64,000 nucleotides of DNA, taken from assembly GCA_965240325.2 (NCBI GenBank), contig OZ251247.1, forward strand, positions 992,001 to 1,056,000, in the 5' to 3' direction. Position 1 is the stretch's first letter, and each line of letters starts with the position of its first letter. This document shows positions 3,679 to 31,753 of the stretch, piece by piece. The translations under genes were made by a program, and so were the position numbers. The DNA is from Rebecca billardiae RCC1528 (taxonomy: Eukaryota; Protista; Haptophyta). The notes under the pieces were generated by a model that saw only the letters and a program-made list of their open reading frames with translations, did no database searches and was not told where the DNA came from.

Positions 3679-3726
<48 letters not shown>

Positions 3727-6289: not shown

Positions 6290-7801
6290 TCACCGGAACG
6301 CCGTCCGCAGGGACCCGACCAATGCAGGCGTGGCCACGTGGCTTGGCTCGTCGCCCACAGCCGCGGTGCGGAGGCCGAGGCCGAGCGCGGCTGAGTGCGC
6401 TCCGCACGCGTACACGCTTCCATCCGCCGTCTCAAACAGCGAGTGGCGGTTGCCCATGGCGCAGCGCACCACGCGCGTGCGCGCCATGGCGGATACGCGT
6501 GCAGGAGCCAGCTCGCCTCCATCAGTGCGTCCGGTGCCCAGCATGCCGCCCGATTTGAGCCCGAACGTGTGCACGCTGCCGTCCGCACCCAGCACAGCGC
6601 TGCCCAGGGCGCCAGCGCTGGTGCGCACAGCGCGCACGGCACCGGACAGCGCCTCCACACGCTTGGGCAGGAAGAGCGTGCTGCGATCGCCGTGGCCAAG
6701 GCAGCCACTCCCGCCGTTCCCGAAGGAGTGAACGCCGCCATCCGCGTCCACCACCAGGCTGTGCTCGAAGCCCGCGTTCACGTGCACGGCGCGCACGCCC
6801 GCGAGCGCCTCGATGCGCCTCGGCGTGTGCTGATCCTGCTCGTCGCCGTGGCCGAGCGCGCCGTAGTAGCCAGAGCCACACGAGTAGACGGCACCGCTGG
6901 TCGAGAGAAGCAGCGCGTGCTCGGCCCCTGCCGATACCCCGCCCACGCGCACGCCGTCCAGCGCCTCGATGCGCGTCGGCTCACACCGGTGCTCCGTGTC
7001 GCCGTGGCCGAGCTGGCCGCAGCGGTTGAGGCCCCAGCTGTACGCACAGCCCGCGGCGCTGAGCGCGAGGCTGTGGCAGGCGCCCGCGGCAATGCATACG
7101 ACGTGCTCGTGTGCGAGCGCACGGACGCACCGATACGCCCCCCGCTCAGCGTCGTAATCGTCACCGAGCACGAGATGGCCGTACCTGTTGCCGCCGCAGC
7201 CGTACACCGTCCCAGCATCGCTCAGCGCGAGCAGGTGCTCGTAGCCAGCGGCCACCGCGACCACGCGCACCGCGGAGAGCGAGACCACGCGCATCGGCAC
7301 CACGGGCACGGGCGCACCGGGGCGGCCCAGCGCAGGCGGCGCGACGAACTCACCCGTCTCCCGACCGTCTTCGTCGCGCACCTTCTCCTCGCCGCACGTG
7401 TGCAGCCCGCCCTCCGCGTCCACAAACGCGCTGAAACTGAGACCGCACGCGATCGGGCTCGCGTGCGCGCACGCCAGCAAGTGCACGCGCTGCTCACGTG
7501 CGAACAGCAGCTCGGTCCAGGTGCACATGCCCAGCGGAAGCACGGCCGGGAGCGCGCGCTCGTGGCCGCGCGCGCGTGCACGCTCGCGCAGAGCGCCCTC
7601 GATCGGCGAGCGGCCGGCGGGTGGCGCGCCGCGGAAGAGGCTCGAGGTGGCGTTGGCGGCGGCGAGGTCGTGCACGTCGTCGAGGTGGCTGACGATGCGC
7701 TCCACCAGCTCGACTGGCAGGCGCGCCAGAGGTGATGGCGACGACGAGGCCGTAAGGGCGGGCGGCGGAGCCGCCTCGCGCGCCTGTTGTGTCGTCCGCA
7801 T
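6290..7801 (-). CDS. F-box-like / RCC1-repeat beta-propeller protein, copy 1 (503 aa)
   Basis: N-terminal LARLPVELVERIVSHLDDVHDLAAANATSSLF (F-box-like), then RCC1 repeats (AGxxHsLal...GxVYSWGxNxxGQLGHGD...P.rIEAL). Intact ATG-to-TGA ORF. Confidence 0.92.
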   Translation of the reverse strand: MRTTQQAREAAPPPALTASSSPSPLARLPVELVERIVSHLDDVHDLAAANATSSLFRGAPPAGRSPIEGALRERARARGHERALPAVLPLGMCTWTELLFAREQRVHLLACAHASPIACGLSFSAFVDAEGGLHTCGEEKVRDEDGRETGEFVAPPALGRPGAPVPVVPMRVVSLSAVRVVAVAAGYEHLLALSDAGTVYGCGGNRYGHLVLGDDYDAERGAYRCVRALAHEHVVCIAAGACHSLALSAAGCAYSWGLNRCGQLGHGDTEHRCEPTRIEALDGVRVGGVSAGAEHALLLSTSGAVYSCGSGYYGALGHGDEQDQHTPRRIEALAGVRAVHVNAGFEHSLVVDADGGVHSFGNGGSGCLGHGDRSTLFLPKRVEALSGAVRAVRTSAGALGSAVLGADGSVHTFGLKSGGMLGTGRTDGGELAPARVSAMARTRVVRCAMGNRHSLFETADGSVYACGAHSAALGLGLRTAAVGDEPSHVATPALVGSLRTAFR

Positions 7802-8262
7802 TCCTTCCCGTTCGGCCCTCGACGGGTGCCGCAGTGCGGGCGACGACGGGTGGCCGTTGGCGAGGAATTTTTTGGCGTTATCATTTCTGCTTTTTCTCGA
7901 ATGGCTGCGCCATCAATCCACAATCATCTCCTCCTTACCGAACAGGCAGCCACCGACGCGCGCGGCGCAGAGCTCACTGTGCTCCTGGGAACGAGTGCGG
8001 ACGCAATATAGGAAATGCCAACACACGTGGACATGGAGATATGGAGGGCCGTGCCATATGGAGCGCTTGACGTGGCAGTCGTGCCATTCGCACAGACGAC
8101 ACTGTCGTGTCGTGTGTCGTCTGCTCACGTCTGGCGCTGTCACGTCACTGTCACTGTGGCGCACGCTGTGGGCGGACAGCACTGGGTGGGTGGGGAGCTG
8201 TGCGGCGATCGGACTGCACTCGGGCACTGCGCCGAGGTGTGCAGCGAGCAGCGACCTGCTGC

Positions 8263-9774
8263 TCAGCGGAACGCGGTGCGCAGGGACCCGACCAATGCAG
8301 GCGTGGCCACGTGGCTCCGCTCGTCGTCGCCCACAGCCGTGCGGAGGCCGAGGCCGAGTGCGGCTGAGTGCGCTCCGCACGCATACACGCTTCCATCCAC
8401 CGTCTCAAACAGCGAGTGGCGTTGGCCCATGGCGCAGCGCAGCACGCGCGTGTGCGCCAATGCGGATACGCGTGCAGGAGCCAGCTCGCCTCCATCAGTG
8501 CGTCCGGTGCCCAGCATGCCGCCCGAGTTGAGCCCGAACGCGTGCACGCTGCCGTCCGCGCCCAGCACAGCGCTGCTCGACACGCCAGCGCACGCGCGCA
8601 CCGCACGCACAACACCAGACAGCGCCTCCACACGCTTGGGCAAGTAGAGCCTGCGGCAGTCGCCGTGGCCGAGGCAGCCAGTCCAGCCGCTCCCGAAGGA
8701 GTGCACGCCGCCATCCGCGTCCACCACCAGGCTGTGCGCACCGCCCGCGCTCACGTGCACGGCGCGCACGCCCGCGAGCGCCTCGATGCGCCTCGGCGTG
8801 TGCTGCTCCTGCTCGTCGCCGTGGCCGAGCTGGCCCAGGCCGCCATTGCCACACGAGTAGACCGCCCCGCTGGTCGAGAGCAGCAGAGAGTGCTCGTCCC
8901 CTGCCGACACCCCGCCCACGCGCACGCCGTCCAGCGCCTCGATGCGCGTCGGCTCCCACCGCTGCTCCGTGTCGCCGTGGCCGAGCTGGCCACAGTGGTT
9001 GAGGCCCCAGCTGTACGCGCACCCAGCGGCGGTGAGCGCGAGGCTGTGGCAGGCGCCTGCGGCAATGCATACGACGTGCTCGTGTGCGAGCGCACGGACG
9101 CACCGATACGCCCCCCGCTCAGCGTCGTAATCGTCACCGAGCCCGAGCTGGCCGCACTCGTTGCCGCCGCAGCCGTACACCGTCCCAGCATCGCTCAGCG
9201 CGAGCAGGTGCTCCCAGCCAGCGGCTACTGCGATCACGCGTACTGCGGAGAGCGAGGCCACGCGCATCGGCACCACGAGCACGGGCGCACCGGGGCGGCC
9301 CAGCGCAGGCGGCGCGACGAACTCACCCGTCTCCCGACCGTCTTCGTCGCGCACCTTCTCCTCGCCGCACGTGTGCAGCCCGCCCTCCGCGTCCACAAAC
9401 GCGCTGAAACTGAGACCGCACGCGATCGGGCTCGCGTGCGCGCACGCCAGCAAGTGCACGCGCTGCTCACGCGCGAACAGCAGCTCGGTCCACGTGCACA
9501 CGCCCGGCGGGAGCACGGCCGGGAGCGCGCGCTCGTGGCCGCGCGCGCGTGCACGCTCGCGCAGAGCGCCCTCGATCGGCGAGCGGCCGGCGGGTGGCGC
9601 GCCGCGGAAGAGGCGCGAGGTGGCGTTGGCGGCGGCGAGGTCGTGCACGTCGTCGAGGCGAAAGAGGATGCGGTCCACCAGCTCGACTGGCAGGCGCGCC
9701 AGAGGTGATGACGACGACGAGGTCGTACGGGCGGGCGGCGGAGCCGCCTCGCGCGCCTGTTGTGTCGTCCGCAT
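8263..9774 (-). CDS. F-box-like / RCC1-repeat protein, copy 2 (503 aa from the MRTTQQ ATG; in-frame upstream ATGs exist)
   Basis: Paralog of copy 1, intact ORF; start chosen by homology with the other copies. Confidence 0.92.
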   Translation of the reverse strand: MRTTQQAREAAPPPARTTSSSSSPLARLPVELVDRILFRLDDVHDLAAANATSRLFRGAPPAGRSPIEGALRERARARGHERALPAVLPPGVCTWTELLFAREQRVHLLACAHASPIACGLSFSAFVDAEGGLHTCGEEKVRDEDGRETGEFVAPPALGRPGAPVLVVPMRVASLSAVRVIAVAAGWEHLLALSDAGTVYGCGGNECGQLGLGDDYDAERGAYRCVRALAHEHVVCIAAGACHSLALTAAGCAYSWGLNHCGQLGHGDTEQRWEPTRIEALDGVRVGGVSAGDEHSLLLSTSGAVYSCGNGGLGQLGHGDEQEQHTPRRIEALAGVRAVHVSAGGAHSLVVDADGGVHSFGSGWTGCLGHGDCRRLYLPKRVEALSGVVRAVRACAGVSSSAVLGADGSVHAFGLNSGGMLGTGRTDGGELAPARVSALAHTRVLRCAMGQRHSLFETVDGSVYACGAHSAALGLGLRTAVGDDERSHVATPALVGSLRTAFR

Positions 9775-10246
9775 CCCTCCCATTCGGCCCTCGACGGGTG
9801 CCGCGGTGCCTGCGCGCGACGACGCGGTTGGCCGTTGGCGAGGGATTTTTATTGGCGTTATCATTTCGATCATCTTATTTTTCTTTGTCTGCGCCATCAA
9901 TCCACCACCGCCGGTGCTTTCACCAAACAGGCAGCCACCGACGCGCGCGGCGCAGAGCTCACTGTGGTCCTGGGAACGCGTGCGGACGCAATATGGGAAA
10001 TACTAACGCATATGCGGACATGGCGATATGGAGCAGGGCCGTGCCATATGGAGCGCTTGACGTGGCAGTCGTGCCACTCGCACAGACGACACTGTCGTGT
10101 CGTCGTGTCGTCTGCTCATCACGTCAGACGTCTGGCGCTGTGGCGCACGCAGTGAGCAGACAGCACTGGGTGGGTGGGGAGCTGTGCGGCGATCGGACTG
10201 CACTCGGGCACTGCGCCGAGGTGTGCAGCGGGCAGCGACCTGCTGC

Positions 10247-11761
10247 TCAGCGGAACGCGGTGCGCAGGGACCCGACCAATGCAGGCGTGGCCACGTGGCT
10301 CCGCTCGTCGTCGCCCACAGCCTCAGTGCTGAGGCCGAGGCCGAGCGCGGCTGAGTGCACTCCGCACACGTACACGTCTCCCCCCGCCGTCTCAAACAGC
10401 GAGTGGCGGTGGCCCATGGCGCAGCGCAGCACGCGCGTGTGCGCCAAGGCGGCCACGCACACTGGCACCCGCTGGCACTCCTCCGCGCGTCCGGTGCCCA
10501 GACTGCCGCCCCAGTTGTAGCCGAACGCGTGCACGCTGCCGTCCGTGCCCAGCACAGCGCTGCTCGACACGCCAGCGCACGCGCGCACCGCACGCACAAC
10601 ACCAGACAGCGCCTCCACACGCTTGGGCAAGTAGAGCGTGCTGCCATCGCCATGGCCGAGGCAGCCACTCCAGCCGTCTCCGAAGGAGTGAACGCCACCC
10701 AGCGCATCCACCGCCAGGCTGTGGCGATCGCCCGCGCTCACGTGCACGGCACACACGCCAGCGAGCGCCTCGATGCGCCTCGGCGTGTGCTGATCCTGCT
10801 CGTCGCCGTGGCCGAGCTGGCCCAGGCCGCCATTGCCACACGAGTAGACCGCGCCGCTGGTCGAGAGCAGCAGAGAGTGCTCGGCCCCTGCCGATACCCC
10901 GCCTAAGCGCACGCCGCCCAGCGCCTCGATGCGCGTCGGCTCCCACCGGCCCTCCGTGTCGCCGTGGCCGAGCTGGCCGTAGTTGTTGAGGCCCCAGCTG
11001 TACGCGCACCCAGCGGCGGTGAGCGCGAGGCTGTGGCAGGCGCCTGCGGCAATGCATACGACGTGCTCGTGTGCGAGCGCACGGACGCACCGATACGCCC
11101 CCCGCTCAGCGTCGTAATCGTCACCGAGCACGAGCTGGCCGTACCTGTTGCCGCCGCAGCCGTACACCGTCCCAGCATCGCTCAGCGCGAGCAGGTGCTC
11201 GTAGCCAGCGGCCACCGCGACAACGCGCACTGCAGAGAGCGAGGCAACGCGCGTCGGCACCACGGGCACGAGCGCACCGGAATGGCCCAACGCAGGCGGC
11301 GCGACGAACTCACCCGTCTCCCGACCGTCTTCGTCGTACACCTTCTCCTCGCCGCACGTGTGCAGCCCGCCCTCCGCGTCCACAAACGCGCTGCTGAAAT
11401 TGAGACCGCACGCGATCGGGCTCGCGTGCGCGCACGCCAGCAAGTGCACGCGCTGCTCACGTGCAAACAGCAGCTCGGTCCAGGTGCTCACGCCCGGCGG
11501 GAGCACGGCCGGCAGCGCGCGCTCGTGGCCCCGCGCGCGTGCGCGCTCGCGCAGCGCGTGCTCGACGGGCGAGCGGCCGCCGGGCGCGCCGCGGAAGAGG
11601 CGCGCCGTGGCGTTGGCGGCGGCGAGGTCGTGCACGTCGTCGAGGCGAAAGAGGATGCGGTCCACCAGCTCGACTGGCAGGCGCGCCAGAGGTGATGACG
11701 ACGACGAGGTCGTACGGGCGGGCGGCGGAGCCGCCTCGCGCGCCTGTTGTGTCGTCCGCAT
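10247..11761 (-). CDS. F-box-like / RCC1-repeat protein, copy 3 (504 aa)
   Basis: Paralog, intact ORF. Confidence 0.92.
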   Translation of the reverse strand: MRTTQQAREAAPPPARTTSSSSSPLARLPVELVDRILFRLDDVHDLAAANATARLFRGAPGGRSPVEHALRERARARGHERALPAVLPPGVSTWTELLFAREQRVHLLACAHASPIACGLNFSSAFVDAEGGLHTCGEEKVYDEDGRETGEFVAPPALGHSGALVPVVPTRVASLSAVRVVAVAAGYEHLLALSDAGTVYGCGGNRYGQLVLGDDYDAERGAYRCVRALAHEHVVCIAAGACHSLALTAAGCAYSWGLNNYGQLGHGDTEGRWEPTRIEALGGVRLGGVSAGAEHSLLLSTSGAVYSCGNGGLGQLGHGDEQDQHTPRRIEALAGVCAVHVSAGDRHSLAVDALGGVHSFGDGWSGCLGHGDGSTLYLPKRVEALSGVVRAVRACAGVSSSAVLGTDGSVHAFGYNWGGSLGTGRAEECQRVPVCVAALAHTRVLRCAMGHRHSLFETAGGDVYVCGVHSAALGLGLSTEAVGDDERSHVATPALVGSLRTAFR

Positions 11762-11866
11762 TCCTTCCCGTTCGGCCCTCGACGGGTGCCGCGGTGCCTG
11801 CGCGCGACGACGCGGTTGGCCGTTGGCGAGGGATTTTTATTTTCGCGATCATCTTTTTCTTTGGCT

Positions 11867-12690: not shown

Positions 12691-14202
12691 TCAGCGGAAC
12701 GCGGTCCGCAGGGAGCCGACCAATGCAGGCGTGGCCACGTGGCTCCGCTCGTCGCCCACAGCCGCGGTGCTGAGGCCGAGGCCGAGCGCGGCTGAGTGCA
12801 CTCCGCACGCGTACACGCTTCCATCCGCCGTCTCAAACAGCGAGTGGCGGTAGCCCATGGCGCAGCGCAACACGCGCGTGTGCGCCAAGGCGGATACGCG
12901 TGCAGGAGCCAGCTCGCCTCCATCAGTGCGTCCGGTGCCCAGCATGCCGCCCGAGTTGAGCCCGAACGTGTGCACGCTGCCGTCCGCGCCCAGCACAGCG
13001 CTGCTCGTGGCGCCAGCGCTGGTGCGCACAGCGCGCACGGCACCAGACAGCGCCTCCACACGCTTGGGCAGGTAGTGCGTGCTGCGGTTGCCGTGGCCAA
13101 GGCGACCACTCCCGCCGTCCCCGAAGGAGTAAACGCCGCCCACCGCGTCCACCACCAGGCTGTGCTCGAAGCCCGCGTTCACGTGCACGGCGCGCACGCC
13201 CGCGAGCGCCTCGATGCGCCTCGGCGTGTGATGATCCTGCTCGTCGCCGTGGCCGAGCGCGCCGTAGGAGCCAGAGCCACACGAGTAGACGGCACCGCTG
13301 GTCGAGAGAAGCAGCGCGTGCTCGGCCCCTGCCGATACCCCGCCTAAGCGCACGCCGTCCAGCGCCTCGATGCGCGTCGGCTCCCACCGGCCCTCCGTGT
13401 CGCCGTGGCCGAGCTGGCCGTAGTCGTTGAGGCCCCAGCTGTACGCGCACCCAGCGGCGGTGAGCGCGAGGCTGTGGCAGGCGCCTGCGGCAATGCATAC
13501 GACGTGCTCATGTGCGAGCGCACGGACGCACCGATACGCTCCCCACTCAGCGTCGCAATCGTCACCGAGCACGAGCCGGTCGTACCTGTTGTCGCCGCAG
13601 CCGTACACCGTCCCAGCATCGCTCAGCGCGAGCAGGTGCTCAGAGCCAGCGGCCACCGCGACCATGCGCACCGCGGAGAGCGAGACCACGCGCATCGGCA
13701 CCACGGGCACGGGCGCACCGGGGCGGCCCAGCGCAGGCGGCGCGACGAACTCACCCGTCTCCCGACCGTCTTCGTCGCGCACCTTCTCCTCGCCGCACGT
13801 GTGCAGCCCGCCCTCCGCGTCCACAAACGCGCTGAAATTGAGACCGCACGCGTTCGGGCTCGCGTGCGCGCACGCCAGCAAGTGCACGCGCTGCTCACGT
13901 GCGAACAGCAGCTCAGTCCACGTGCACATGCCCAGCGGAAGCACGGCCGGGAGCGCGCGCTCGTGGCCGCGCGCGCGTGCACGCTCGCGCAGAGCGCCCT
14001 CGATCGGCGAGCGGCCGGCGGGTGGCGCGCCGCGGAAGAGGCGCGAGGTGGCGTTGGCGGCGGCGAGGTCGTGCACGTCGTCGAGGTGGCTGACGATGCG
14101 CTCCACCAGCTCGACTGGCAGGCGCGCAAGAGGTGATGGCGACGACGAGGCCGTAAGGGCGGGCGGCGGAGCCGCCTCGCGCGCCTGTTGTGTCGTCCGC
14201 AT
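12691..14202 (-). CDS. F-box-like / RCC1-repeat protein, copy 4 (503 aa)
   Basis: Paralog, intact ORF. Confidence 0.92.
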   Translation of the reverse strand: MRTTQQAREAAPPPALTASSSPSPLARLPVELVERIVSHLDDVHDLAAANATSRLFRGAPPAGRSPIEGALRERARARGHERALPAVLPLGMCTWTELLFAREQRVHLLACAHASPNACGLNFSAFVDAEGGLHTCGEEKVRDEDGRETGEFVAPPALGRPGAPVPVVPMRVVSLSAVRMVAVAAGSEHLLALSDAGTVYGCGDNRYDRLVLGDDCDAEWGAYRCVRALAHEHVVCIAAGACHSLALTAAGCAYSWGLNDYGQLGHGDTEGRWEPTRIEALDGVRLGGVSAGAEHALLLSTSGAVYSCGSGSYGALGHGDEQDHHTPRRIEALAGVRAVHVNAGFEHSLVVDAVGGVYSFGDGGSGRLGHGNRSTHYLPKRVEALSGAVRAVRTSAGATSSAVLGADGSVHTFGLNSGGMLGTGRTDGGELAPARVSALAHTRVLRCAMGYRHSLFETADGSVYACGVHSAALGLGLSTAAVGDERSHVATPALVGSLRTAFR

Positions 14203-14653: not shown

Positions 14654-16162
14654 TCAGCGGAACGCGGTGCGCAGGGAGCCGACCAATGCAGGCGCGGCCA
14701 CGTGGCTCCGCTCGTCGCCCACAGCCTCAGTGCTGAGGCCGAGGCCGAGAGCGGCTGAGTGCACTCCGCACGCATACACGCTTCCATCCACCGTCTCAAA
14801 CAGCGAGTGGCGTTGGCCCATGGCGCAGCGCAGCACGCGCGTGTGCGCCAATGCGGATACGCGTGCAGGAGCCAGCTCGCCTCCATCAGTGCGTCCGGTG
14901 CCCAGCATGCCGCCCGATTTGAGCCCGAACGTGTGCACGCTGCCGTCCGCACCCAGCACAGCGCTGCTCGACACGCCAGCGCACGCGCGCACCGCACGCA
15001 CAACACCAGACAGCGCCTCCACACGCTTGGGCAAGTAGAGCCTGCGGCAGTCGCCGTGGCCGAGGCAGCCAGACCAGCCGCTCCCGAAGGAGTGCACGCC
15101 GCCATCCGCGTCCACCACCAGGCTGTACGCACCGCCCGCGTTCACGTGCACGGCGCGCACGCCCGCGAGCGCCTCGATGCGCCTCGGCGTGTGCTGATCC
15201 TGCTCGTCGCCGTGGCCGAGCGCGCCGTAGTAGCCAGAGCCACACGAGTAGACGGCACCGCTGGTCGAGAGAAGCAGCGCGTGCTCGGCCCCTGCCGATA
15301 CCCCGCCCACGCGCACGCCGTCCAGCGCCTCGATGCGCGTCGGCTCACACCGGTGCTCCGTGTCGCCGTGGCCGAGCTGGCCGCAGCGGTTGCGGCCCCA
15401 GCTGTACGCGCACCCAGCTGCGCTGAGCGCGAGGCTGTGGTAGGCGCCTGCGGCAATGCATACGATGAGATGCGCCTCGACTCCCCGCACCTGCTCGAAC
15501 ACCTGCCGCTGCGCAGTGTCCCCTAGCCCGAGCTGGCCGTACTCGTTGCCGCCGCAGCCGTACACCGTCCCAGCATCGCCCAGCGCGAGCAGGTGCTCGT
15601 AGCCAGCGGCCACCGCGACAACGCGCACTGCGGAGAGCGAGGCAACGCGCGTCGGCACCACGGGCACGAGCGCACCGGAATGGCCCAGCGCAGGCGGCGC
15701 GACGAACTCACCCGTCTCCCGACCGTCTTCGTCGCGCACCTTCTCCTCGCCGCACGTGTGCAGCCCGCCCTCCGCGTCCACAAACGCGCTGAAACTGAGA
15801 CCGCACGCGATCGGGCTCGCGTGCGCGCACGCCAGCAAGTGCACGCGCTGCTCACGTGCGAACAGCAGCTCGGTCCACGTGCACACGCCCAGCGGAAGCA
15901 CGGCCGGGAGCGCGCGCTCGTGGCCGCGCGCGCGTGCACGCTCGCGCAGAGCGCCCTCGATCGGCGAGCGGCCGGCGGGTGGCGCGCCGCGGAAGAGGCG
16001 CGAGGTGGCGTTGGCGGCGGCGAGGTCGTGCACGTCGTCGAGGTGGCTGACGATGCGCTCCACCAGCTCGACTGGCAGGCGCGCAAGAGGTGATGGCGAC
16101 GACGAGGCCGTACGGGCGGGCGGCGGAGCCGCCTCGCGCGCCTGTTGTGTCGTAGTCCGCAT
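14654..16162 (-). CDS. F-box-like / RCC1-repeat protein, copy 5 (502 aa)
   Basis: Paralog, intact ORF; carries a unique segment GLGDTAQRQVFEQVRGVEAHLIV. Confidence 0.92.
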   Translation of the reverse strand: MRTTTQQAREAAPPPARTASSSPSPLARLPVELVERIVSHLDDVHDLAAANATSRLFRGAPPAGRSPIEGALRERARARGHERALPAVLPLGVCTWTELLFAREQRVHLLACAHASPIACGLSFSAFVDAEGGLHTCGEEKVRDEDGRETGEFVAPPALGHSGALVPVVPTRVASLSAVRVVAVAAGYEHLLALGDAGTVYGCGGNEYGQLGLGDTAQRQVFEQVRGVEAHLIVCIAAGAYHSLALSAAGCAYSWGRNRCGQLGHGDTEHRCEPTRIEALDGVRVGGVSAGAEHALLLSTSGAVYSCGSGYYGALGHGDEQDQHTPRRIEALAGVRAVHVNAGGAYSLVVDADGGVHSFGSGWSGCLGHGDCRRLYLPKRVEALSGVVRAVRACAGVSSSAVLGADGSVHTFGLKSGGMLGTGRTDGGELAPARVSALAHTRVLRCAMGQRHSLFETVDGSVYACGVHSAALGLGLSTEAVGDERSHVAAPALVGSLRTAFR

Positions 16163-16606: not shown

Positions 16607-18118
16607 TCAGCGGAACGCGGTGCGCAGGGACCCGACCAATGCAGGCGTGGCCACGTGGCTCCGCTCCTCGCCCACAGCCTCAGTGCTGAGGCCGAGGCCG
16701 AGCGCGGCTGAGTGCACTCCGCACGCGTACACGTCTCCGCACGCCGTCTCAAACAGCGAGTGGCGGTGGCCCATGGCGCAGCGCAGCACGCGCGTGTGCG
16801 CCAAGGCGGCCACGCACACTGGCACCCGCTGGCACTCCTCCGCGCGTCCGGTGCCCAGAATGCCGCCCACGTTGTAGCCGAACGCGTGCACGCTGCCGTC
16901 CGCGCCCAGCACAGCGCTGCTCGACACGCCAGCGCACGCGCGCACCGCACGCACAACACCAGACAGCGCCTCCACACGCTTGGGCAAGTAGAGCGTGCTG
17001 CCATCGCCATGGCCGAGGCAGCCACTCCAGCCGTCACCGAAGTAGTGAACGCCACCCAGCGCATCCACCGCCAGGCTGTGGCGATCGCCCGCGCTCACGT
17101 GCACGGCACACACGCCAGCGAGCGCCTCGATGCGCCTCGGCGTGTGCTGCTCCTGCTCGTCGCCGTGGCCGAGCTGGCCCAGGCCGCCATTGCCACACGA
17201 GTAGACCGCCCCGCTGGTCGAGAGCAGCAGAGAGTGCTCGGCCCCTGCCGATACCCCGCCCACGCGCACGCCGGCCAGCGCCTCGATGCGCGTCGGCTCG
17301 CACCGCTGCTCCGTGTCGCCGTGGCCGAGCTGGCCGCAGCGGTTGAGGCCCCAGCTGTACGCACAGCCCGCTGCGCTGAGCGCGAGGCTGTGGCAGGCGC
17401 CTGCGGCGATGCATACGACGTGCTCGTGTGCGAGCGCACGGACGCACCGATACGCCCCCCGCTCAGCGTCGTAATCGTCACCGAGCACGAGCCGGCCGTA
17501 CCTGTTGCCGCCGCACGGGAACACCGTCCCAGCATCGCTCAGCGCGAGCAGGTGGGCCAAGCCAGCGGCCACCGCGACCACGCGCACCGCGGAGAGCGAG
17601 ACCACGCGCATCGGCACCACGGGCACGGGCGCACCGGGGCGGCCCAGCGCAGGCGGCGCGACGAACTCACCCGTCTCCCGACCGTCTTCGTCGCGCACCT
17701 TCTCCTCGCCGCACGTGTGCACTCCACCCTCCGCGTCCACAAACGCGCTGAAATTGCGACCGCACGCGATCGGGCTGGCGTGCGCGCAAGCCAGCAAGTG
17801 CACGCGCTGCTCACGTGCGAACAGCAGCTCGGTCCACGTGCACATGCCCAGCGGAAGCACGGCCGGGAGCGCGCGCTCGTGGCCGCGCGCGCGTGCACGC
17901 TCGCGCAGAGCGCCCTCGATCGGCGAGCGGCCGGCGGGTGGCGCGCCGCGGAAGAGGCGCGAGGTGGCGTTAGCGGCGACGAGGTCGTGCACGTCGTCGA
18001 GGTGGCTGACGATGCGGTCCACCAGCTCGACTGGCAGGCGCGCAAGAGGTGATGGCGACGACGAGGTCGTAAGGGCGGGCGGCGGAGCCGCCTCGCGCGC
18101 CTGTTGTGTCGTCCGCAT
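16607..18118 (-). CDS. F-box-like / RCC1-repeat protein, copy 6 (503 aa from the MRTTQQ ATG)
   Basis: Paralog, intact ORF; start chosen by homology. Confidence 0.92.
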   Translation of the reverse strand: MRTTQQAREAAPPPALTTSSSPSPLARLPVELVDRIVSHLDDVHDLVAANATSRLFRGAPPAGRSPIEGALRERARARGHERALPAVLPLGMCTWTELLFAREQRVHLLACAHASPIACGRNFSAFVDAEGGVHTCGEEKVRDEDGRETGEFVAPPALGRPGAPVPVVPMRVVSLSAVRVVAVAAGLAHLLALSDAGTVFPCGGNRYGRLVLGDDYDAERGAYRCVRALAHEHVVCIAAGACHSLALSAAGCAYSWGLNRCGQLGHGDTEQRCEPTRIEALAGVRVGGVSAGAEHSLLLSTSGAVYSCGNGGLGQLGHGDEQEQHTPRRIEALAGVCAVHVSAGDRHSLAVDALGGVHYFGDGWSGCLGHGDGSTLYLPKRVEALSGVVRAVRACAGVSSSAVLGADGSVHAFGYNVGGILGTGRAEECQRVPVCVAALAHTRVLRCAMGHRHSLFETACGDVYACGVHSAALGLGLSTEAVGEERSHVATPALVGSLRTAFR

Positions 18119-23100: not shown

Positions 23101-23900
23101 AGCTCCGCGGAGGTGTTGTGCGCGAGCTCGCGCCGGTCTGCTGACGGCGATTCCGGCGCAGTAGGGCAGGTTAGGCGAGCTTGGCATTCACAGACATACA
23201 TGGACGATTGGTCCGAGCATCGATCTCATTGGTCCGAGTTGATCATGCGCCACACCGTGCGGTAGCGTAGCGGGCGTACGCAGCGCACCAATTCAAGCCG
23301 GCCGACGCGCGCCGCGCACGGCGCGAGGTGGCCAAGAAGCGGGTGGTGAGCCGCTGGTGGCGCAAAGGCACGGGCCAGTAGCGCCCACCAGCGTCACGCG
23401 CGCGCGCACCCGAGACCATATCGGCGTCTCAGATGTCGCGAGCGCGCGGCGGTCCACTGCCTCCGGCCGCTCGTGCTCGAGCGGAACCGAGCTCTGAGCG
23501 CCCGAACGCGTCGGAGCTCGGTTTTCGAGCGGGGTCCGAGAAAAAGGCTCCGCGCCACCCTAAAAGGCCGAAGGAGGAGCGAAAATGCGCCGCGGCTTTG
23601 ATTTTCTTTTTAAATGAGCGGTTTGCCCCCCCTATATAAATGGGTAACATAGTCGATCTTGCAGTAGTTGAGTACGGCCACTTGCGCACAGACCACAGCC
23701 CATCCTGACCAGGTCGTTCCCCCTGCACTGGGAATCCGCGGTTTGGACATAAGAGAAAAACAGCCGCAGGACGCACCCGTCGCTACCCGCGAATAAGATT
23801 TCAGGTCTCGCGGGTGCGGATGTGCGTCAATCGATGAGCTGGTCTCGCAATCCCAAAATTGAGCCGCAATGAGATAGATGGTGCAGGGAGCCCCCCCGGT

Positions 23901-25988
23901 GCTTGGGGCGTCAACCCCCGAACCAGTCCGGAGAGATTGCGCCTCCCGGACGGCAACCCTCCCAGTGGTGGGGTGCCGTCCGGGAGGTGAGTCCGGCGCG
24001 CCGCCTCTGCGCCAACGGCGTCAGCCGTTGCGGCGGGCATGGCGCGCGTCATTCTGACTGACGGCCTCCCAGACGGCGTGATCCTCGCGCACGAGGACGG
24101 CGCGCTGTCCGTGTACACTGCCCGCTTCACAGCCGGTGCTGGGGGCGACCTCCGCTTCGCAGGCGCGCCCGCTCCTGGAGCGATTGCGCTCCATGCTGTG
24201 CGCGTGGCGGATTGGTTCCCGACGCCGGCCAAATGCAAGGGCACCGGCGGGTTCCTGCTTCCCGGCGCCGCAGATGCGCTCGACCTCATCGTCGGCTTCG
24301 AGGTGGTCCGCGAGCCCGCCCACTTCCGCTCGATCGAAACCGCGGTTGAGTGGCGCGGCGCTGGCGCCGAGCGGAAGCGGGTGTTTCGAAATGTGCCGAT
24401 GTGGATGCAGCCAGCCCGCGACAGCTGTGTGCGCTGTGCGGCAGCTGCTCGTACGCCCGGCGGTGTGCGCGCTGTCGGCGGCGCACAAGGATGCGCTCAA
24501 GCCTCTCGACGGCCAGGTGACGGCTGGCGACCTGATGCCCGCGCTCGTCGCGGCCGTGGCGCGCCTCTTGCCTGGTCTCGAGGTGCCGACGCCGCCGGCC
24601 GCGGCCGCGCCCGCACAGCACGCGGGTACGGCAGCAGCGGCGAGAGATGGAACCGCCGTCGATGGGCTCGACGCCCACCTAGAAGAAGACGAAGAAGTCC
24701 GGCGCGGGCGATGGCGGCAGCGCGAGCGCGCGCGCGTGCCCCGCGCCAGCGCTGGCACAGTGCACCGCATGCCGCGCGCTCGGCATCTGCGAGTGGGTGA
24801 GGAACGGGCATGCGAGCAGCGCCTGCCCGTGCACGTCACCGCCTCCGGGTGCGTCGTCGAGCGAGATCACGCCACGGCAGGCGGCGGCCAAGCACGAGTC
24901 CGCCATCGCCACCGCGAGGAAGTTCTCGGTCAAGACGGAGACGCGCGCGGACCGTCTGTCGTGCCCGAGCTCACCTCTGCACGGCGCGCGTACTGTGCGC
25001 TTTGGCGCGCCGCTTAAACTACTGTACCGATAAATGTATGTGATGATGAGCGCTGATGACACTGATGCATCAGCAAATCGCGCGCAGTGATGATGACGAT
25101 GTATATGTAAATCAACCAGGCTGTGCAGTCTTATTTTAAAGCGACTACGACGACTATCCGAGCAGGTCGCTACGCGGCCCACGGCCACCGCGTCCGCGGC
25201 ACCGACTACGTCTACTGTACTGTGGCAGGCGGCACGCGCGCGCGCGCGCACGCCACCTACGCCAACAGAGACATAAGGGCCGGTCTGGTGGGTACGAAGT
25301 GGTCGAACGCGAGCGTGCACAGCGGCATCGCCTGCGTCTGGCGTGATGAACTCGGAGCGGAAGGTCGAGAGTCGACAAGGCCCATGTGCCGGGACGTCAC
25401 AGGGCAGAGCCGCTCGGCACTCCTCGGCAGCATCGACGACATAGCAACCCGTATCAGCGTGCCCATGGGGCATCTTGGACCGGGGTACTCACAGACGACC
25501 CCCAGGCTGCGGCTGGCACCGATTCGCCCGCTGGGAAGCGAAGGATGCCTCCATGCAGAGCATACCCTGCGGGCTGCCGCGAGGTGCACCATTCGTGAGT
25601 TACGCGCGCAGTGCGCGAGCACTTGCCAGTGGCAAGGGCGCGCGCAGAACGCCGGGCGCGTGCGCCCGAGCGGTGTATAACATGCGTGCCCACTCGCCCA
25701 TGCCGTGCCCCGACCTTAATTGGCCCTATCCGCGCCGAGCGCGCGCCCTTGGTGCGCGCGCCGGCTCGCTTGGCAGGCGTTGATGGCTTGGCAGCGGGCT
25801 ACTGCGCGCGGCGAGGAGCGCGAGAGGACAGGAAAAGAGGCGCGCGCGGTGCCCACGTGTCCTGTGGACCGCGCCGATCAGCCGCGCCGGCCTGCAGCGC
25901 CGGTAGGCGGGCGCACGCGCGCCTCTCGTGGGCGCGCCATCGTGTCCGGGCCGCTGCGAGCCCGATCTCGGGGGTTGACGCCCCAAGC
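23901..25988. mobile_element. Innermost ~2.09 kb element with a perfect 21-bp TIR and a possible 5-bp TSD
   Basis: GCTTGGGGCGTCAACCCCCGA (23901-23921) / TCGGGGGTTGACGCCCCAAGC (25968-25988). CCGGT lies directly outside both ends (23896-23900, 25989-25993). Confidence 0.55.
24039..25017 (+). pseudogene. Frameshifted gene remnant with a C-terminal Cys/His knuckle-like motif
   Basis: Protein-like text switches frame from ORF 24039 (MARVILTDGLPDG...) to ORF 24136 (...HKDALKPLDGQVTAGDLMPALVAAV...) and then to CTACRALGICEWVRNGHASSACP near 24760-24830. Confidence 0.45.
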
Positions 25989-26089
25989 CCGGTGGCGGCT
26001 CGGCAGGCGAGGGCCGACCAAATCTTGACCTTTGCCCTCGGCGGCAGGGCGGGCAGGCGAAGGCGGCCGAGCGCCGTTGGCGGCCGGCG

Positions 26090-27378
26090 CGCCCGGGGCA
26101 CGGCGCTGCGGGCGCGGATGTGCTCGCGGAGCCGGCTTGCGTGGACAGGCTGTTGCGGGAGAGTATATGGCGCCCTCCTGCGCCGCGCGTCTCGCGCCAC
26201 GCCTCTTTTCGCCGCGGCTCAGGGCAGCGCGCACGCGCGCGCCGCCTCGGAGGCCAGGCCGCACCGTGCCGCGCCGCAGCCGCAACCGCGCGCGCGCCGT
26301 GCGCGGCGTGGTCGGGAAGGAACGGGGGGTGCTGCCGGGCGAGATGACGACATCATGTGCGCACGCCATGCCGCCCCGCGGCGCCGCGAAAGGGCACGAT
26401 AACGGATCCGCACAGCTGTTGACGAGTGCTGATTTCTTGTCGTGCCTGAAGCCAGACCTCGGAGCTCGAAGAAGATGATGAAAGTGTATCCGCGCGAGGA
26501 AAGCGTCGCACCCAGCACGTCTACACGACCACGCGGTGATGAACATTCATGTAAGAGTATCCCGCGTGCCCGCTTGGCACTGTTCTGTGTCTCAATGATC
26601 GTCCCGACAAGGGTCACGACCGCGAGGCCGTGCACACCATTCATAGTGTGACAACTCGAAGAGGCGTGCAAACGGACCAGCGACACGCTCGGCAAGGCGT
26701 GGCGGGGCGGCATGGCGTGCGCACATGATATCGCCATCTCGCCCGGCAGCCGTGCCCGTTCCTTCCCGACCACGCCGCGCACGGCGCGCACGCGGTCGGC
26801 TGCGGCGCAGGCAAGGCTGGCCTTGAGGCGACGCGCCGCGTGCGCGCTGCCCTGAGCCGAGGCGAAAGAGGCGTGGCGCAAGTCGCGCGGTGCAGGAGGG
26901 CGGCAGATACTCTCCCACAACAGCCCGTCCACGCACGCCGGCTCCGCAAGCACATCCGCGCCCGCAGCGCCCTGGCCCGGGCGCGGCCCCCAGCGGTCAC
27001 GACCGCGAGGCCGTGCACGTCATTTGTGACAACTCGAAGAGGCGTGCAAACGGACCAGCGACACGCTCGGCAAGGCGTGGCGGGGCGGCATGGCGTGCGC
27101 ACATGATATCGCCATCTCGCCCGGCAGCCGCGCCCGTTCCTTCCCGACCACGCCGCGCACGGCGCGCGCGCGGTCGGCTGCGGCGCAGGCCGAAGGCTGG
27201 CCTCGGTCGGAGGCGGCGCGCGCGTGCGCGCTGCCCTGAGCCGAGGCGAAAGAGGCGTGGCGCAAGTCGCGCGGCGCAGGAGGGCGGCAGATACTCTCCC
27301 GCAACAGCCCGTCCACGCACGCCGGCTCCGCAAGCACATCCGCGCCCGCAGCGCCATGGCCCGGGCGCGCCCCCCAGC
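26090..27378. repeat. ~280 bp long inverted repeat whose right arm lies within a 383 bp tandem duplication
   Basis: 26090-26380 is a diverged reverse complement of ~26700-26985 and ~27080-27365. The tandem unit starts GGTCACGACCGCGAGGCCGTGCAC at 26612 and 26995. Confidence 0.85.
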
Positions 27379-28308
27379 GCCGGGCCAGCTGCATCGCACT
27401 CGCCGCCAAGCCGCAGGGGGCGGGTCAGAATCGGTGCTCCGCACCCGCGGGAGGGCTCCCGCCGCTCCGGTTGCACGCGAAGAACTCATTTCCAGCGCAT
27501 CGATTTCGTGAGCGGACTATCGCTGACGAGGCTGATTACTGCGTTCCACGGCTTTGCCGCGCTCGGGATTTGGCTTCTCGAATGGAGGATCTGGTTTCGT
27601 CATTTTCAATTGGAAACCTTGATTAGATCGTTCAAGTGGTCTGATAGAGGAAGCGGAACGCTAAATCTGCGTTGCTATGCCGCGGCCTCGCGCTCTGAAT
27701 AGTGCGAAACCGCGGATTCCCAGTGCAGGGGGAACGACCTGGTCAGAATGATGAAAATGTGTGTGTGAGTGTAATGGCCTGTACCAGGGTTCATGCTCGC
27801 CTCGACGTACGCCAATAAGTAAGTTCGTGCGTTTGGGCTCATTTCGGCTAAGTACTTACCCACATTCGGACTGACGATTCTCTATGTGTCCGTAGTTGTC
27901 CGCGGCGCGCGCGCGCACGCTCACGACGGGCCGCGGATGCGATTTTTAGGCCGAAACTTTTGCTGCGCCCGGGCTGGGCCCATTTGTTACGCTGTTTCCG
28001 GGTGTGAGCGCGTGCCTAGGGGCCCGCGTTCATTTGGCGATAAAATCCCCGAAAGTGCTCCAGTGCGTTTGGACCAGGCTAGCGATATGCATATGGAGGG
28101 CCGTGCCATATGGAGCGCTTGACGTGGCAGTCGTGCCACTCGCACAGACGACACTGTCGTGTCGTCGTGTCGTCTGCTCATCACGTCAGACGTCTGGCGC
28201 TGTGGCGCACGCAGTGAGCAGACAGCACTGGGTGGGTGGGGAGCTGTGCGGCGATCGGACTGCACTCGGGCACTGCGCCGAGGTGTGCAGCGGGCAGCGA
28301 CCTGCTGC

Positions 28309-29820
28309 TCAGCGGAACGCGGTGCGCAGGGACCCGACCAATGCAGGCGTGGCCACGTGGCTTGGCTCGTCGCCCACAGCCTCAGTGCTGAGGCCGAGGC
28401 CGAGTGCAGCTGAGTGCTCTCCGCACGCGTACACGTCTCCGCCCACCGTCTCAAACAGTGAGTGGCAGTGGCCCGTGGTGCAGCGCAGCAAGCGCGTGTG
28501 CGCCAAGGCGGCCACGCACACTGGCACCCGCTGGCACTCCTCCGCGCGTCCGGTGCCCAGAATGCCGCCCAAGTCGTAGCCGAACGCGTGCACGCTGCCG
28601 TCCGCGCCCAGCACGGCGCTGCTCGACACGCCAGCGCACGCGCGCGCCGCACGCACAACACCAGACAGCGCCTCCACACGCTTGGGCAAGTAGAGCGTGC
28701 TGCCATCGCCGTGACCCAGGCAGCCACTCCAGCCGTCTCCGAAGGAGTGAACGCCACCCCGCGCATCCACCGCCAGGCTGTGGCGAAAGCCCGCGCTCAC
28801 GTGCACGGCACACACGCCAGCGAGCGCCTTGATGCGCCTCGGCGTGTGCTGATCCTGCTCGTCGCCGTGGCCGAGCTGGCCCAGGCCGCCATTGCCACAC
28901 GAGTAGACCGCGCCGCTGGTCGAGAGCAGCAGCGCGTGATCGTCCCCTGCCGATACCCCGCCCACGCGCACGCCGTCCAGCGCCTCGATGCGCGTCGGCT
29001 CGCACCGCTGCTCCGTGTCGCCGTGGCCGAGCTGGCCGCAGTGGTTGAGGCCCCAGCTGTACGCGCACCCAGCGGCGGTGAGCGCGAGGCTGTGGCAGGC
29101 GCCTGCGGCAATGCATACGACGTGCTCGTGCGCGAGCGCACGGACGCACCGATACGCCCCCCGCTCAGCGTCGTAATCGTCACCGAGCACGAGCTGGCCG
29201 TACTCGTTGCCGCCGCAGCCGTACACCGTCCCAGCATCGCTCAGCGCGAGCAGGTGCTCGTAGCCAGCGGCCACCGCGACCACGCGCACCGCGGAGAGCG
29301 AGACCACGCGCATCGGCACGACGGGCACGGGCGCACCGGGGCGGCCCAACGCAGGCGGCGCGACGAACTCACCCGTCTCCCGACCGTCTTCGTCGCGCAC
29401 CTTCTCCTCGCCGCACGTGTGCAGCCCGCCCTCCGCGTCCACAAACGCGCTGAAGTTGTACGCGCACGCGATCGGGCTCGCGTGCGCGCACGCCAGCAAG
29501 TGCACGCGCTGCTCACGTGCGAACAGCAGCTCGGTCCACGTGCACACGCCCGGCGGGAGCACGGCCGGGAGCGCGCGCTCGTGGCCGCGCGCGCGTGCAC
29601 GCTCGCGCAGAGCGCCCTCGATCGGCGAGCGGCCGGCGGGTGGCGCGCCGCGGAAGAGGCGCGAGGTGGCGTTGGCGGCGGCGAGGTCGTGCACGTCGTC
29701 GAGGTGGCTGACGATGCGATCCACCAGCTCGACTGGGAGGCGCGCCAGAGGTGATGGCGACGACGAGGTCGAAAGGGCGGGCGGCGGAGCCGCCTCGCGC
29801 GCCTGTTGTGTCGTCCGCAT
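28309..29820 (-). CDS. F-box-like / RCC1-repeat protein, copy 8 (503 aa)
   Basis: Paralog, intact ORF. Confidence 0.92.
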   Translation of the reverse strand: MRTTQQAREAAPPPALSTSSSPSPLARLPVELVDRIVSHLDDVHDLAAANATSRLFRGAPPAGRSPIEGALRERARARGHERALPAVLPPGVCTWTELLFAREQRVHLLACAHASPIACAYNFSAFVDAEGGLHTCGEEKVRDEDGRETGEFVAPPALGRPGAPVPVVPMRVVSLSAVRVVAVAAGYEHLLALSDAGTVYGCGGNEYGQLVLGDDYDAERGAYRCVRALAHEHVVCIAAGACHSLALTAAGCAYSWGLNHCGQLGHGDTEQRCEPTRIEALDGVRVGGVSAGDDHALLLSTSGAVYSCGNGGLGQLGHGDEQDQHTPRRIKALAGVCAVHVSAGFRHSLAVDARGGVHSFGDGWSGCLGHGDGSTLYLPKRVEALSGVVRAARACAGVSSSAVLGADGSVHAFGYDLGGILGTGRAEECQRVPVCVAALAHTRLLRCTTGHCHSLFETVGGDVYACGEHSAALGLGLSTEAVGDEPSHVATPALVGSLRTAFR

Positions 29821-30274
29821 TCCTTCCCGTTCGGCCCTCGACGGGTGCCGCAGTGCGGGCGACGACGGGTGGCCGTTGGCGAGGGATTTTTATGGCGTTA
29901 TCATTTCGATCTTTTTCTTTGGCTGCGCCATCAATCCACCACCACCGGTGCTTTCACCGAACAGGCAGCCACCGACGCGCGCGGCGCAGAGCTCACTGTG
30001 GTCCTGGGAACGCGTGCGGACGCAATATAGGAAATGCCAACTCACGTACGTGTACATGGAGATATGGAGGGCCGTGTCATATGGAGCGCTTGACGTGGCA
30101 GTCGTGCCACTCGCACAGACGACACTGTCGTGTCGTGTGTCGTCTGCTCACGTCTGGCGCTGTCACTGTGGCGCACGCTGTGGGCGGACAGCACTGGGTG
30201 GGTGGGGAGCTGTGCGGCGATCGGACTGCACTCGGGCACTGCGCCGAGGTGTGCAGCGAGCAGCGACCTGCTGC

Positions 30275-31753
30275 TCAGCGGAACGCGGTGCGCAGGGACC
30301 CGACCAATGCAGGCGTGGCCACGTGGCTCCGCTCGTCGTCGCCCACAGCGGTGCGGAGGCCGAGGCCGAGCGCGGCTGAGTGCACTCCGCACGCGTACAC
30401 GTCTCCGCACGCCGTCTCAAACAGCGAGTGGCAGTTGCCCATGGCGCAGCGGACCACGCGCGTGCGCGCCATGGCGGATACGCGTGCAGGAGCCAGCTCG
30501 CCTCCATCAGTGCGTCCGGTGCCCAGCATGCCGCCCGAGTTGAGCCCGAACTCGTGCACGCTGCCGTCCGCGCCCAGCACGGCGCTGCTAGAGGCGCCAG
30601 CGCTGGTGCGCACAGCGCGCACGGCACCAGACAGCGCCTCCATACGTTTGGGCAGGTAGAGCCTGCTGTCATCGCCGTGGCCCAGGCAGCCAGTCAAGCC
30701 ACTCCCAAAGGTGTGCACGTTACCCGCAGCGTCCACCACGAGGCTGTGCGCAACACCCGCGCTCACATGCACGGCGCGCACGCCCGCGAGCGCCTCGATG
30801 CGCCTCGGCGTGTGCTGATCCTGCTCGTCGCCGTGGCCGAGCTGGCCCAGGCCGCCATTGCCACACGAGTAGACCGCGCCACTGGTCGAGACCAGCAGAG
30901 CGTGCTCGTCCCCTCCCGATACCCCACCCACGCGCACGCCGTCCAGCGCCTCGATGCGCGTCGGCTCCCACCGGTCCTCCGTGTCGCCGTGGCCGAGCTG
31001 GCCGCAGCTGTTGTAGCCCCAGCTGTACGCACAGCCCGCGGCAGTGAGCGCGAGGCTGTGGCAGGCGCCTGCGGCAATGCATACGACGTGCTCGTGTGCG
31101 AGCGCACGGACGCACCGATATGCCCCCCGCTCAGCGTCGTAATCGTCACCGAGCACGAGATGGCCGTACTCGTTGCCGCCGCAGCCGTACACCGTCCCAG
31201 CATCGCTCAGCGCGAGCAGGTGCTCGTAGCCAGCGGCCACCGCGACCATGCGCACCGCGGAGAGCGAGACCACGCGCATCGGCACGACGGGCACGGGCGC
31301 ATCGGGGCGGCCCAACGCAGGCGGCGCGACGAACTCACCCGTCTCCCAACCGTCTTCGTCGCGCACCTTCTCCTCGCCGCACGTGTGCAGCCCGCCCTCC
31401 GCGTCCACAAACGCGCTGAAACTGAGACCGCACGCGATCGGGCTGGCGTGCGCGCACGCGAGCGAGTGCACGCGCTCACGCAAGAGAAGCAGCTCAGTCC
31501 ACGTGCACACGCTGGGCGGGAGCACGGCCGGCAGCGCGCGCTCGTGGCCCCGCGCGCGTGCGCGCTCGCGCAGCGCACGCTCGACCGGCGAGCGGCCGCC
31601 AGGCGCGCCGCGGAAGAGGCGCGCCGTGGCGTTGGCGGCGGCAAGGTCGTGCACGTCGTCGAGGCGAAAGAGGATGCGGTCCACCAGCTCGACTGGCAGA
31701 CGCGCCAGCGGTGGTGGCGGCGAGGGCGAGGTCGCGCAGTGTAGTGTCCGCAT
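30275..31753 (-). CDS. F-box-like / RCC1-repeat protein, copy 9 (492 aa), distinct N-terminus and upstream region
   Basis: Paralog starting MRTLHCATSPSPPPPLARLPVEL; its upstream 130 bp is unlike the shared spacer. Confidence 0.9.
   Translation of the reverse strand: MRTLHCATSPSPPPPLARLPVELVDRILFRLDDVHDLAAANATARLFRGAPGGRSPVERALRERARARGHERALPAVLPPSVCTWTELLLLRERVHSLACAHASPIACGLSFSAFVDAEGGLHTCGEEKVRDEDGWETGEFVAPPALGRPDAPVPVVPMRVVSLSAVRMVAVAAGYEHLLALSDAGTVYGCGGNEYGHLVLGDDYDAERGAYRCVRALAHEHVVCIAAGACHSLALTAAGCAYSWGYNSCGQLGHGDTEDRWEPTRIEALDGVRVGGVSGGDEHALLVSTSGAVYSCGNGGLGQLGHGDEQDQHTPRRIEALAGVRAVHVSAGVAHSLVVDAAGNVHTFGSGLTGCLGHGDDSRLYLPKRMEALSGAVRAVRTSAGASSSAVLGADGSVHEFGLNSGGMLGTGRTDGGELAPARVSAMARTRVVRCAMGNCHSLFETACGDVYACGVHSAALGLGLRTAVGDDERSHVATPALVGSLRTAFR

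Follow-up and report, generated by a model that had tools for sequence, protein, structure and literature searches.

A cluster of nine F-box-like/RCC1-propeller genes in the haptophyte Rebecca billardiae, with positively selected positions recurring from blade to blade: candidate substrate receptors of a ubiquitin ligase

We describe nine closely related genes at positions 6290-31753 of a 64,000-nucleotide stretch of the genome of the haptophyte alga Rebecca billardiae RCC1528 (contig OZ251247.1, positions 992,001 to 1,056,000; the whole stretch is referred to below as the window). Each of them encodes an F-box-like N-terminus followed by a seven-bladed RCC1-like propeller. We suggest, with somewhat more confidence than doubt, that they form a single cluster within a large family specific to this lineage, the products of which are probable substrate receptors of Skp1-Cul1-F-box (SCF) ubiquitin ligases. 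The copies differ mainly in loops on one face of the propeller, at positions that recur in successive blades and show a signal of positive selection, and sequence has been exchanged between the copies by pervasive gene conversion.

All nine genes are complete open reading frames (ORFs, from ATG to stop) on the minus strand, intronless and 492-504 aa long. Copies 1 (6290..7801, 503 aa), 2 (8263..9774, 503 aa), 3 (10247..11761, 504 aa), 4 (12691..14202, 503 aa), 5 (14654..16162, 502 aa), 6 (16607..18118, 503 aa) and 7 (18586..20100, 504 aa counted from the shared MRTTQQ start) are followed, after an interruption, by copies 8 (28309..29820, 503 aa) and 9 (30275..31753, 492 aa), the last of which is unlike the other copies in its first ~15 residues and in the DNA upstream. 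Protein identity to copy 1 is 84-93%, and column identity in the nine-copy alignment averages 91%. A tblastn search with copy 1 found exactly nine family copies in the window, every one of full length, and no pseudogene fragments of the family. This agrees with a preliminary description of this DNA, which had listed nine intact same-strand paralogs with a near-invariant scaffold and with indels that all keep the frame. It had also taken the array to be continuous, which it is not: copies 7 and 8 are 8.2 kb apart with no family copy between them, and the third spacer measures 929 bp against a usual ~450 bp. Within that spacer, ~490 bp of extra DNA (11839-12327) are unmatched elsewhere in the window.

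The repeat unit takes in the spacers, as in regular units the 460 bases upstream of the genes are 5-13% diverged and the 200 bases downstream 0-13%, values near those for synonymous sites in the genes themselves (mean dS 0.13). GC content at third codon positions (GC3) is 0.85 in the genes, compared to a GC content of 0.61-0.69 in the spacers, and such a high GC3, in combination with nine unbroken frames, points strongly to coding sequence. No introns have to be assumed, as the encoded proteins can be aligned with outside relatives over their whole length. GC content of the window as a whole is very high (0.6-0.87). The longest identical stretch between any two units is 259 bp, and the window also contains 8 kb of repeated proline codons and 3 kb of satellite DNA, both beyond the reach of short-read assembly; we therefore infer that the assembly is a long-read one and that the array copies are real.

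The propeller of copy 1 occupies residues 117-494 (6320..7453, minus strand) and is closed by the C-terminal strand. Pfam RCC1 (PF00415) matches in six stretches (E 4e-56 to 5e-61), the WD40_RLD match of copy 1 has an E-value of 7e-70, and the PF25390 scores, at 232-237 bits, exceed the cut-off of 150. The AlphaFold2 (AF2) model of copy 1 (predicted local distance difference test, pLDDT, 86.5; predicted template modelling score, pTM, 0.85) comprises three short N-terminal helices (residues 24-27, 30-38, and 43-57), two linker helices, and the seven-bladed propeller, the blade strands of which were assigned by DSSP. In Foldseek comparisons with solved structures UVR8 ranks first, with a template modelling (TM) score of 0.93 by target, followed by the RCC1-like domains (RLDs) of HERC1/2, RPGR, RCC2, and RCC1; TM scores by target to UVR8, HERC2, and RPGR lie at 0.8-0.93. 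The nearest folds in Swiss-Prot are UVR8, HERC3/4, and RCBTB1/2. UVR8 is the best match in sequence as well (E 4e-71, ~30% identity), and both UVR8 and the HERC RLDs match more closely than RCC1 itself. In other relatives a similar propeller is joined to BTB or U-box modules. Found in company with F-box, BTB, or U-box across its relatives, this propeller is therefore a recurring binding part of E3 ligases.

Differences between the nine proteins are distributed very unevenly over this fold. From the strands of the model we defined face X, made up of the turn that precedes a conserved His and of the long loop that follows the next pair of strands, and face Y, which consists of the hairpin turn between the face-X elements and a loop with a short helix. 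Variation is seen in 157 of the 507 alignment columns, and 28 columns have at least three residue states. Face X loops, which make up only ~149 of the 507 columns, hold 21 of these 28, with three in face Y, three in strands, and one in the N-terminal part. Two positions per blade are involved, the residue pair before the His and a four-residue loop after the next strand pair, which together amount to 42 codons over seven blades. The preliminary description had placed the variation at the same two positions of successive blades and had listed variants, all of which are present: YE/WE/SE/LA, AE/DE/DD, FE/GA/DR/VA/FR, and NR/QR/HR/YR/NC before the His (the last series with HC in addition), and GNRY/GNEC/DNRY/GNSC, LNRC/LNHC/LNNY/LNDY/RNRC/YNSC, NGGS/SGWT/DGWS/DGGS/SGWG/SGLT, and LKS/LNS/YNW/YNV/YDL in the loops.

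Tyr, Asn, Trp, Asp, and Ser are enriched at the variable positions. The residue before the blade-2 His (copy 1 Y187; 7241..7243, minus strand) can be Y, W, S, or L, encoded by TAC/TGG/TCT/TTG, and the pair before the blade-5 His, with its five states FE/GA/DR/VA/FR, corresponds to residues 345-346 of copy 1 (6764..6769, minus strand) and is aligned with W233-R234 of UVR8. Each of the nine copies has a unique combination of signatures, drawn from 4-8 signatures per blade. The pattern extends beyond the window: in 36 outside relatives the 42 positions are the most variable ones, with an entropy of 3.07 bits compared to 1.5-1.7 bits elsewhere in the propeller (p 3e-16), the exception being loop position 2, where Gly or Asn is conserved. 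In blade 1 the face-X loop contains an inserted beta-hairpin (7343-7387; copy 1 residues 139-153), which sits at the same place in all copies. It is almost invariant across the nine, with neighbouring loops that vary, and may be a constant contact element.

When aligned to UVR8 by phmmer, the pre-His pairs correspond to D129/S130, A181/E182, and W233/R234, and the four-residue loop cores to R146-N149, W198-Y201, and W250-Y253. Residues named in the UVR8 homodimer and COP1 interface II are D129, R146, Q148, N149, R200, R234, and R286, and further R338, K304, W250, K252, Y253, and W302 (PMC9020657); salt bridges connect R146 with E182 and R234 with E182 (PMC5091643), and the GWRHT triad is located at the dimer interface (PMC4501546). 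Both variable classes therefore occupy the same register within the blades as a face proven to bind partners, which bears out the earlier suggestion that the variable loops lie on the binding face of an RCC1 fold.

UVR8 (PDB 4d9s, 4dnw, 7vgg) is thus the closest solved structure, with an interface to which the hypervariable positions of the algal proteins align, and its rank as the best match in both sequence and fold could suggest that the latter are UVR8-like UV-B photoreceptors. We regard this as extremely improbable and have ruled it out: the GWRHT tryptophan triad (W233, W285, W337), with R286 and R338, is absent in blades 5-7, where the triad positions read FE/GA/DR/VA/FR, AL/VS/AT/AS, and NR/QR/HR/YR/HC/NC, differing between copies. 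The algal proteins also lack the C27/VP motif and carry an added F-box, which is absent from UVR8. Furthermore, UVR8 is a ligand of its ligase, whereas the algal proteins are proposed to be receptor subunits of theirs.

The F-box-like motif of copy 1 (residues 24-57; 7631..7732, minus strand) follows the pattern LP-x-E-L-V...L-F over three predicted helices, and PF12937 matches residues 25-57 at 19-22.6 bits. Its LP-x-E-L...L...D-L core is invariant in all nine copies and conserved in relatives, and pairwise dN/dS (the ratio of nonsynonymous to synonymous divergence) in the N-terminal part is 0.44, so that this part is better conserved than the variable loops. A profile (A3) made from the N-terminal ~90 residues of 32 proteins (three copies from the window, 29 outside relatives) found 16 chains among solved structures at E<=10, and 16 of 16 were F-box proteins. 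FBXO31 was the top match (E 2.3e-5), and the others include FBXW7, Legionella AnkB, FBXO22, cyclin F, FBXO3, and FBXO4, as well as FBXL2, FBXL5, FBH1, and FBXW8. At E<=0.01, PF12937 matches 29 of the 32 members of the profile and PF00646 matches 17, and about a dozen full-length relatives have a precomputed F-box-like match. The N-terminal module, consisting of the F-box and the conserved linker, is present in 300 cluster representatives (E<=1e-10) among 1.84 billion, and these therefore constitute a distinct family of moderate size. Judged by such profile matches, the N-terminus is a real F-box homologue at the level of the family, and a borderline one in each single copy.

Selection was analysed on the nine sequences. 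The gene-wide dN/dS ratio (omega) is 0.55 by the Nei-Gojobori method and 0.37-0.41 by maximum likelihood. Pairwise dN/dS reaches 1.83 in the 42 face-X core codons (bootstrap interval 1.13-3.71), compared to 0.44 in all other codons (0.35-0.55), 0.34 in face Y, and 0.40 in strands. A fixed-class codon model fitted by maximum likelihood gives an omega of 1.5-1.6 for the core and 0.32 for the rest, with omega=1 rejected at p 0.0045 for all seven blades and at p 0.0014 for blades 2-7. As the copies recombine heavily, every alignment segment was given its own tree and its own branch lengths, and the likelihood-ratio test (LRT) was calibrated by simulation. The unsupervised comparison of M1a with M2a assigns 3-4% of codons to a class with omega about 5, and the omega of the selected class stays at 3-5 under every partition. 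With 16 trees the LRT is 17.0, against at most 2.5 in 12 null data sets (16- and 32-block mosaics). The excess of amino acid change that the preliminary description implied for the variable positions is thus recovered, with an omega of 1.5-1.8 at the 42 codons by the pairwise and fixed-class estimates, and the signal holds when recombination is taken into account.

Eleven sites have a posterior above 0.8 under any partition; nine of these belong to face X, and the two others are column 356, on face Y, and a site in the N-terminal tail. With 16 trees, 13 sites exceed 0.5, 10 of which are on face X. Column 347, in the blade-5 pre-His pair, has a posterior for omega>1 of 0.97-1.00 under every partition, and copy 1 Y187 in blade 2 one of 0.87-0.99. 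Old maintained variants, as read from raised synonymous divergence, were considered and rejected, the signal being inconsistent between the two kinds of position (proportion of synonymous differences, pS, 0.23 at the pre-His pairs vs 0.07 at the loop cores).

Several points weigh against reading these genes as substrate receptors with a selected recognition face. The LRT of M2a over M1a falls steadily as the number of trees rises (38.1, 30.5, 17.0, and 9.2 for 4, 8, 16, and 24 segment trees), and null simulations of a 16-block mosaic analysed with four trees gave LRTs of up to 16.8, so that chi-square p-values obtained with few trees (one or four) are untrustworthy. The codon-model code was self-written, not PAML or HyPhy, and the position class was first proposed from these same copies; it has independent supports in the entropy of the outside family, in the UVR8 interface, and in the unsupervised site model. 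Faces were assigned from strand topology and the UVR8 alignment, not from coordinates, and one strong site, column 356 in the hairpin turn of blade 5, is on the opposite face, with a weaker one in the N-terminal tail; the earlier claim that the variable sites share one propeller face consequently holds for most of them but not for a few fast ones. As to the F-box, every single copy scores below the Pfam gathering cut-off of PF12937 (12.6-22.6 vs 24.3 bits), and the match spans only positions 1-32 of the 47 in the profile. The F-box suggested earlier thus stands at the level of the family, where profile A3 finds F-box proteins only, and falls short in single copies.

The observations on selection might also be explained by young tandem duplicates that drift with relaxed loops and have no selected recognition repertoire, with omega>1 arising as an artefact of gene conversion, of multi-nucleotide or CpG mutation, or of the post-hoc choice of sites. 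Recombination does inflate the LRT, as its drop from 38 to 9 with more partitions shows, gene-wide omega is only 0.37-0.55, several variable codons contain CpG sites (e.g. CGC/CAC/TGC), and distant relatives are also most variable at the same positions, as weakly constrained loops would be. However, relaxed constraint predicts an omega near 1, a value that is rejected for this class, the omega of the selected class stays high under every partition, and the 16-tree LRT was not matched by the null data, which with 16 trees never exceeded 2.5. Many of the changes are transversions of at least two steps (e.g. TAC/TGG/TCT/TTG and TTC/GGT/GAT/GTT), and the rest of the protein is under clear constraint (omega 0.32-0.44). 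We therefore hold drift to be unlikely and conclude that the positive-selection signal is real, albeit more modest than the raw LRTs suggest.

The sub-threshold F-box scores, for their part, would fit proteins that work outside SCF ligases, in which the F-box-like helices are a relic or serve another use, the propeller acts as a scaffold or as a small-GTPase exchange factor, and the paralogs are tuned to different endogenous partners. RCC1-like domains do serve in non-ligase settings, as in RCC1, RPGR, Nek8/9, and SERGEF. Set against this are the exclusive retrieval of F-box proteins by the N-terminal profile, the invariance of the LP-x-E-L...L...D-L core among the copies and its conservation in relatives, and the joining of homologous propellers to BTB and U-box, which are other E3-ligase parts. 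In addition, the animal protein FBXO24, which likewise combines an F-box with an RCC1 domain, co-precipitates SKP1, CUL1, and RBX1 and promotes ubiquitylation of MIWI (PMC10932545), and therefore the architecture can work as proposed here. A role outside SCF ligases is in our view rather improbable.

Recombination among the copies is evident from the pairwise homoplasy index (PHI p<=0.001), and 49% of informative site pairs are incompatible. A nearest-neighbour map of the array is a mosaic in which the closest copy switches every few hundred bases, and we conclude that gene conversion among the copies is pervasive. Copy 5 contains a patch (~15353-15622, codons ~181-270) whose divergence from all of the other eight copies is 19-21%. 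Two codons are deleted in this patch, and its RCC1 loop is closer to the canonical form; the probable donor is a family member located beyond the window.

From the domain make-up, the location of most variable sites on one face, the selection, and the exchange between units we infer the following mechanism, favouring SCF substrate receptors over the alternatives above. Skp1-Cul1-Rbx1 would be engaged by the constant F-box at the N-terminus, and the helical linker would hold the propeller, one face of which would present ~5 variable residues per blade (the pair that precedes the conserved His, and three out of four residues of the G-x-G/N-x-x-G loop), or roughly 35 specificity positions in all. 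Each paralog would recognise a target of its own, which would thereby be marked for ubiquitylation; different targets are to be expected because each paralog has a unique combination of blade signatures. Selection would favour point substitutions at the specificity positions, and frequent gene conversion would keep the scaffold, F-box, and spacers alike and at the same time reshuffle blade-sized cassettes, so that new combinations would arise faster than by mutation alone. Candidate targets would be foreign proteins, viral or transposon-derived, or fast-evolving endogenous partners. The proposal of a constant F-box with a variable propeller face, as put forward in the preliminary description, agrees with the data as far as its sequence-level predictions go (F-box homology, one face, and dN/dS >1).

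A more far-reaching possibility, which we put forward only tentatively, is that of an intracellular innate-immune repertoire of a marine alga, in which dozens of F-box/RCC1 receptors, varied by selection and by blade-wise shuffling through gene conversion, would each be specific for one giant-virus or transposon protein and deliver it to the proteasome. With the same reserve, such a repertoire might be seen as a germline-encoded, propeller-based counterpart of the diversity of plant nucleotide-binding leucine-rich repeat receptors (NLRs) or lamprey variable lymphocyte receptors (VLRs).

Tandem F-box families of nematodes and plants show purifying selection on the F-box and positive selection on the recognition domain (Thomas 2006, PMC1524861, as cited in PMC8120010), and the same pattern of selection is seen within C. 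elegans populations (PMC8120010, wild isolates). The algal family resembles these F-box families, and the MATH-BTB ones, in its lineage-specific tandem expansion (nine copies in the window, with the nearest outside relative only 53% identical), in its conserved F-box end, and in positive selection confined to the substrate-recognition domain; the role proposed for the nematode and plant families is the targeting of foreign or fast-changing proteins. It differs in that their recognition domain is FTH, FBA, Kelch, or leucine-rich repeat (LRR) whereas that of the alga is an RCC1 propeller, in that the selected sites of the GC-rich alga recur at the same two positions per blade, and in that blade-scale gene conversion visibly shuffles the variable parts.

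It may be that the algal proteins are SCF adaptors engaged in an internal arms race and not in defence, either as selfish or incompatibility elements or as regulators of endogenous mating or life-cycle factors. Two reports (PMC11573670, PMC12951971) describe F-box expansions in Caenorhabditis that include genes degrading host enzymes in hybrids, and refer to ubiquitin-ligase adaptor families as drivers of the genomic divergence leading to hybrid incompatibility; moreover, no link between the array and viruses emerged from the window. However, the same sequence pattern is predicted by any kind of arms race, and we consider this particular version improbable.

FBXO24 has the same two-domain make-up as the algal proteins, but is reported as a conserved mammalian protein with one named gene and not as a diversifying array (PMC10932545). 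It is not among the 30 best Swiss-Prot fold matches, which therefore give no sign of specific kinship, and the algal architecture is probably independent of it in origin. HERC1/2/3/4 (HECT) and RCBTB1/2 (BTB) also use a seven-bladed RLD as the protein-binding module of a ubiquitin ligase; these results give no indication that they form tandem, diversifying families as in the alga.

The closest outside relative (P0002) is encoded on a 5469 bp contig with 70% GC from Logan run ERR14847148 (locus L001). This contig and that of another relative (P0115), the two that were examined, carry a single family copy each and no array, which for P0002 suggests a related GC-rich organism where the gene is possibly not arrayed. 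Viral contigs and JGI metagenome contigs searched with the nine-copy alignment gave pattern matches, none of which was confirmed as a relative.

Fast-evolving F-box adaptor families have been proposed to provide intracellular defence in nematodes and plants. We found no description of such families in marine algae, and full-text searches returned no papers on haptophyte F-box/RCC1 arrays. New here are the RCC1 propeller as recognition domain, the strictly blade-periodic arrangement of the selected positions, their correspondence to the interface of a solved relative, and the algal host. The family is an unusually readable system, with a rigid, confidently modelled scaffold and ~35 specificity positions in a fixed blade register, and its genes, being short and intronless, are open to swapping, expression, and use as baits. 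If the targets are viral, it would help to show how bloom-forming algae withstand giant viruses; if endogenous, it would be a case study of gene conversion and selection jointly building binding diversity. Designs for targeted protein degradation could also take the propeller as their scaffold.

The interruption of the array (20350..28090) is devoid of family copies and of Pfam, Rfam, and tRNA matches; ORFs of the left flank have no Pfam match either, and neither Rfam families nor tRNAs were detected anywhere in the 64-kb window. Local repeats inside the interruption include a 385 bp tandem duplication (26612-26995 and 26995-27379, 94% identical), part of which is present as an inverted copy at 26074-26385 (87-89% identical); ORFs of this duplicated stretch (26074-27379) gave no Pfam match. 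About 4 kb of the interruption is flanked by a 44-base inverted repeat (23701-23744 and 27707-27750, 97.7% identical), which may mark the two ends of a non-autonomous mobile element as its terminal inverted repeats; no ORF resembling a transposase was detected.

The left edge of the window (5-3117) is occupied by a satellite of ~208 bp (also read as 421 bp) in ~13 copies with 91-94% identity, beyond which AT and TG microsatellites lie at 3664-3724. Immediately upstream of copy 9 there is a 6465-codon ORF on the minus strand (31883-51280), which holds ~2,800 residues of PPSPPP-type repeats and has a GC content of up to 0.87. A 14-base palindrome, GAGATTGCAATCTC, occurs in eight exact copies in the window compared to 0 expected by chance, at positions 33269, 34575, 35216, 36324, 40128, 52657, 62567, and 62641, all of them outside the array; several of these copies fall within the giant ORF and encode EIAIS or DCNL in its reading frame.

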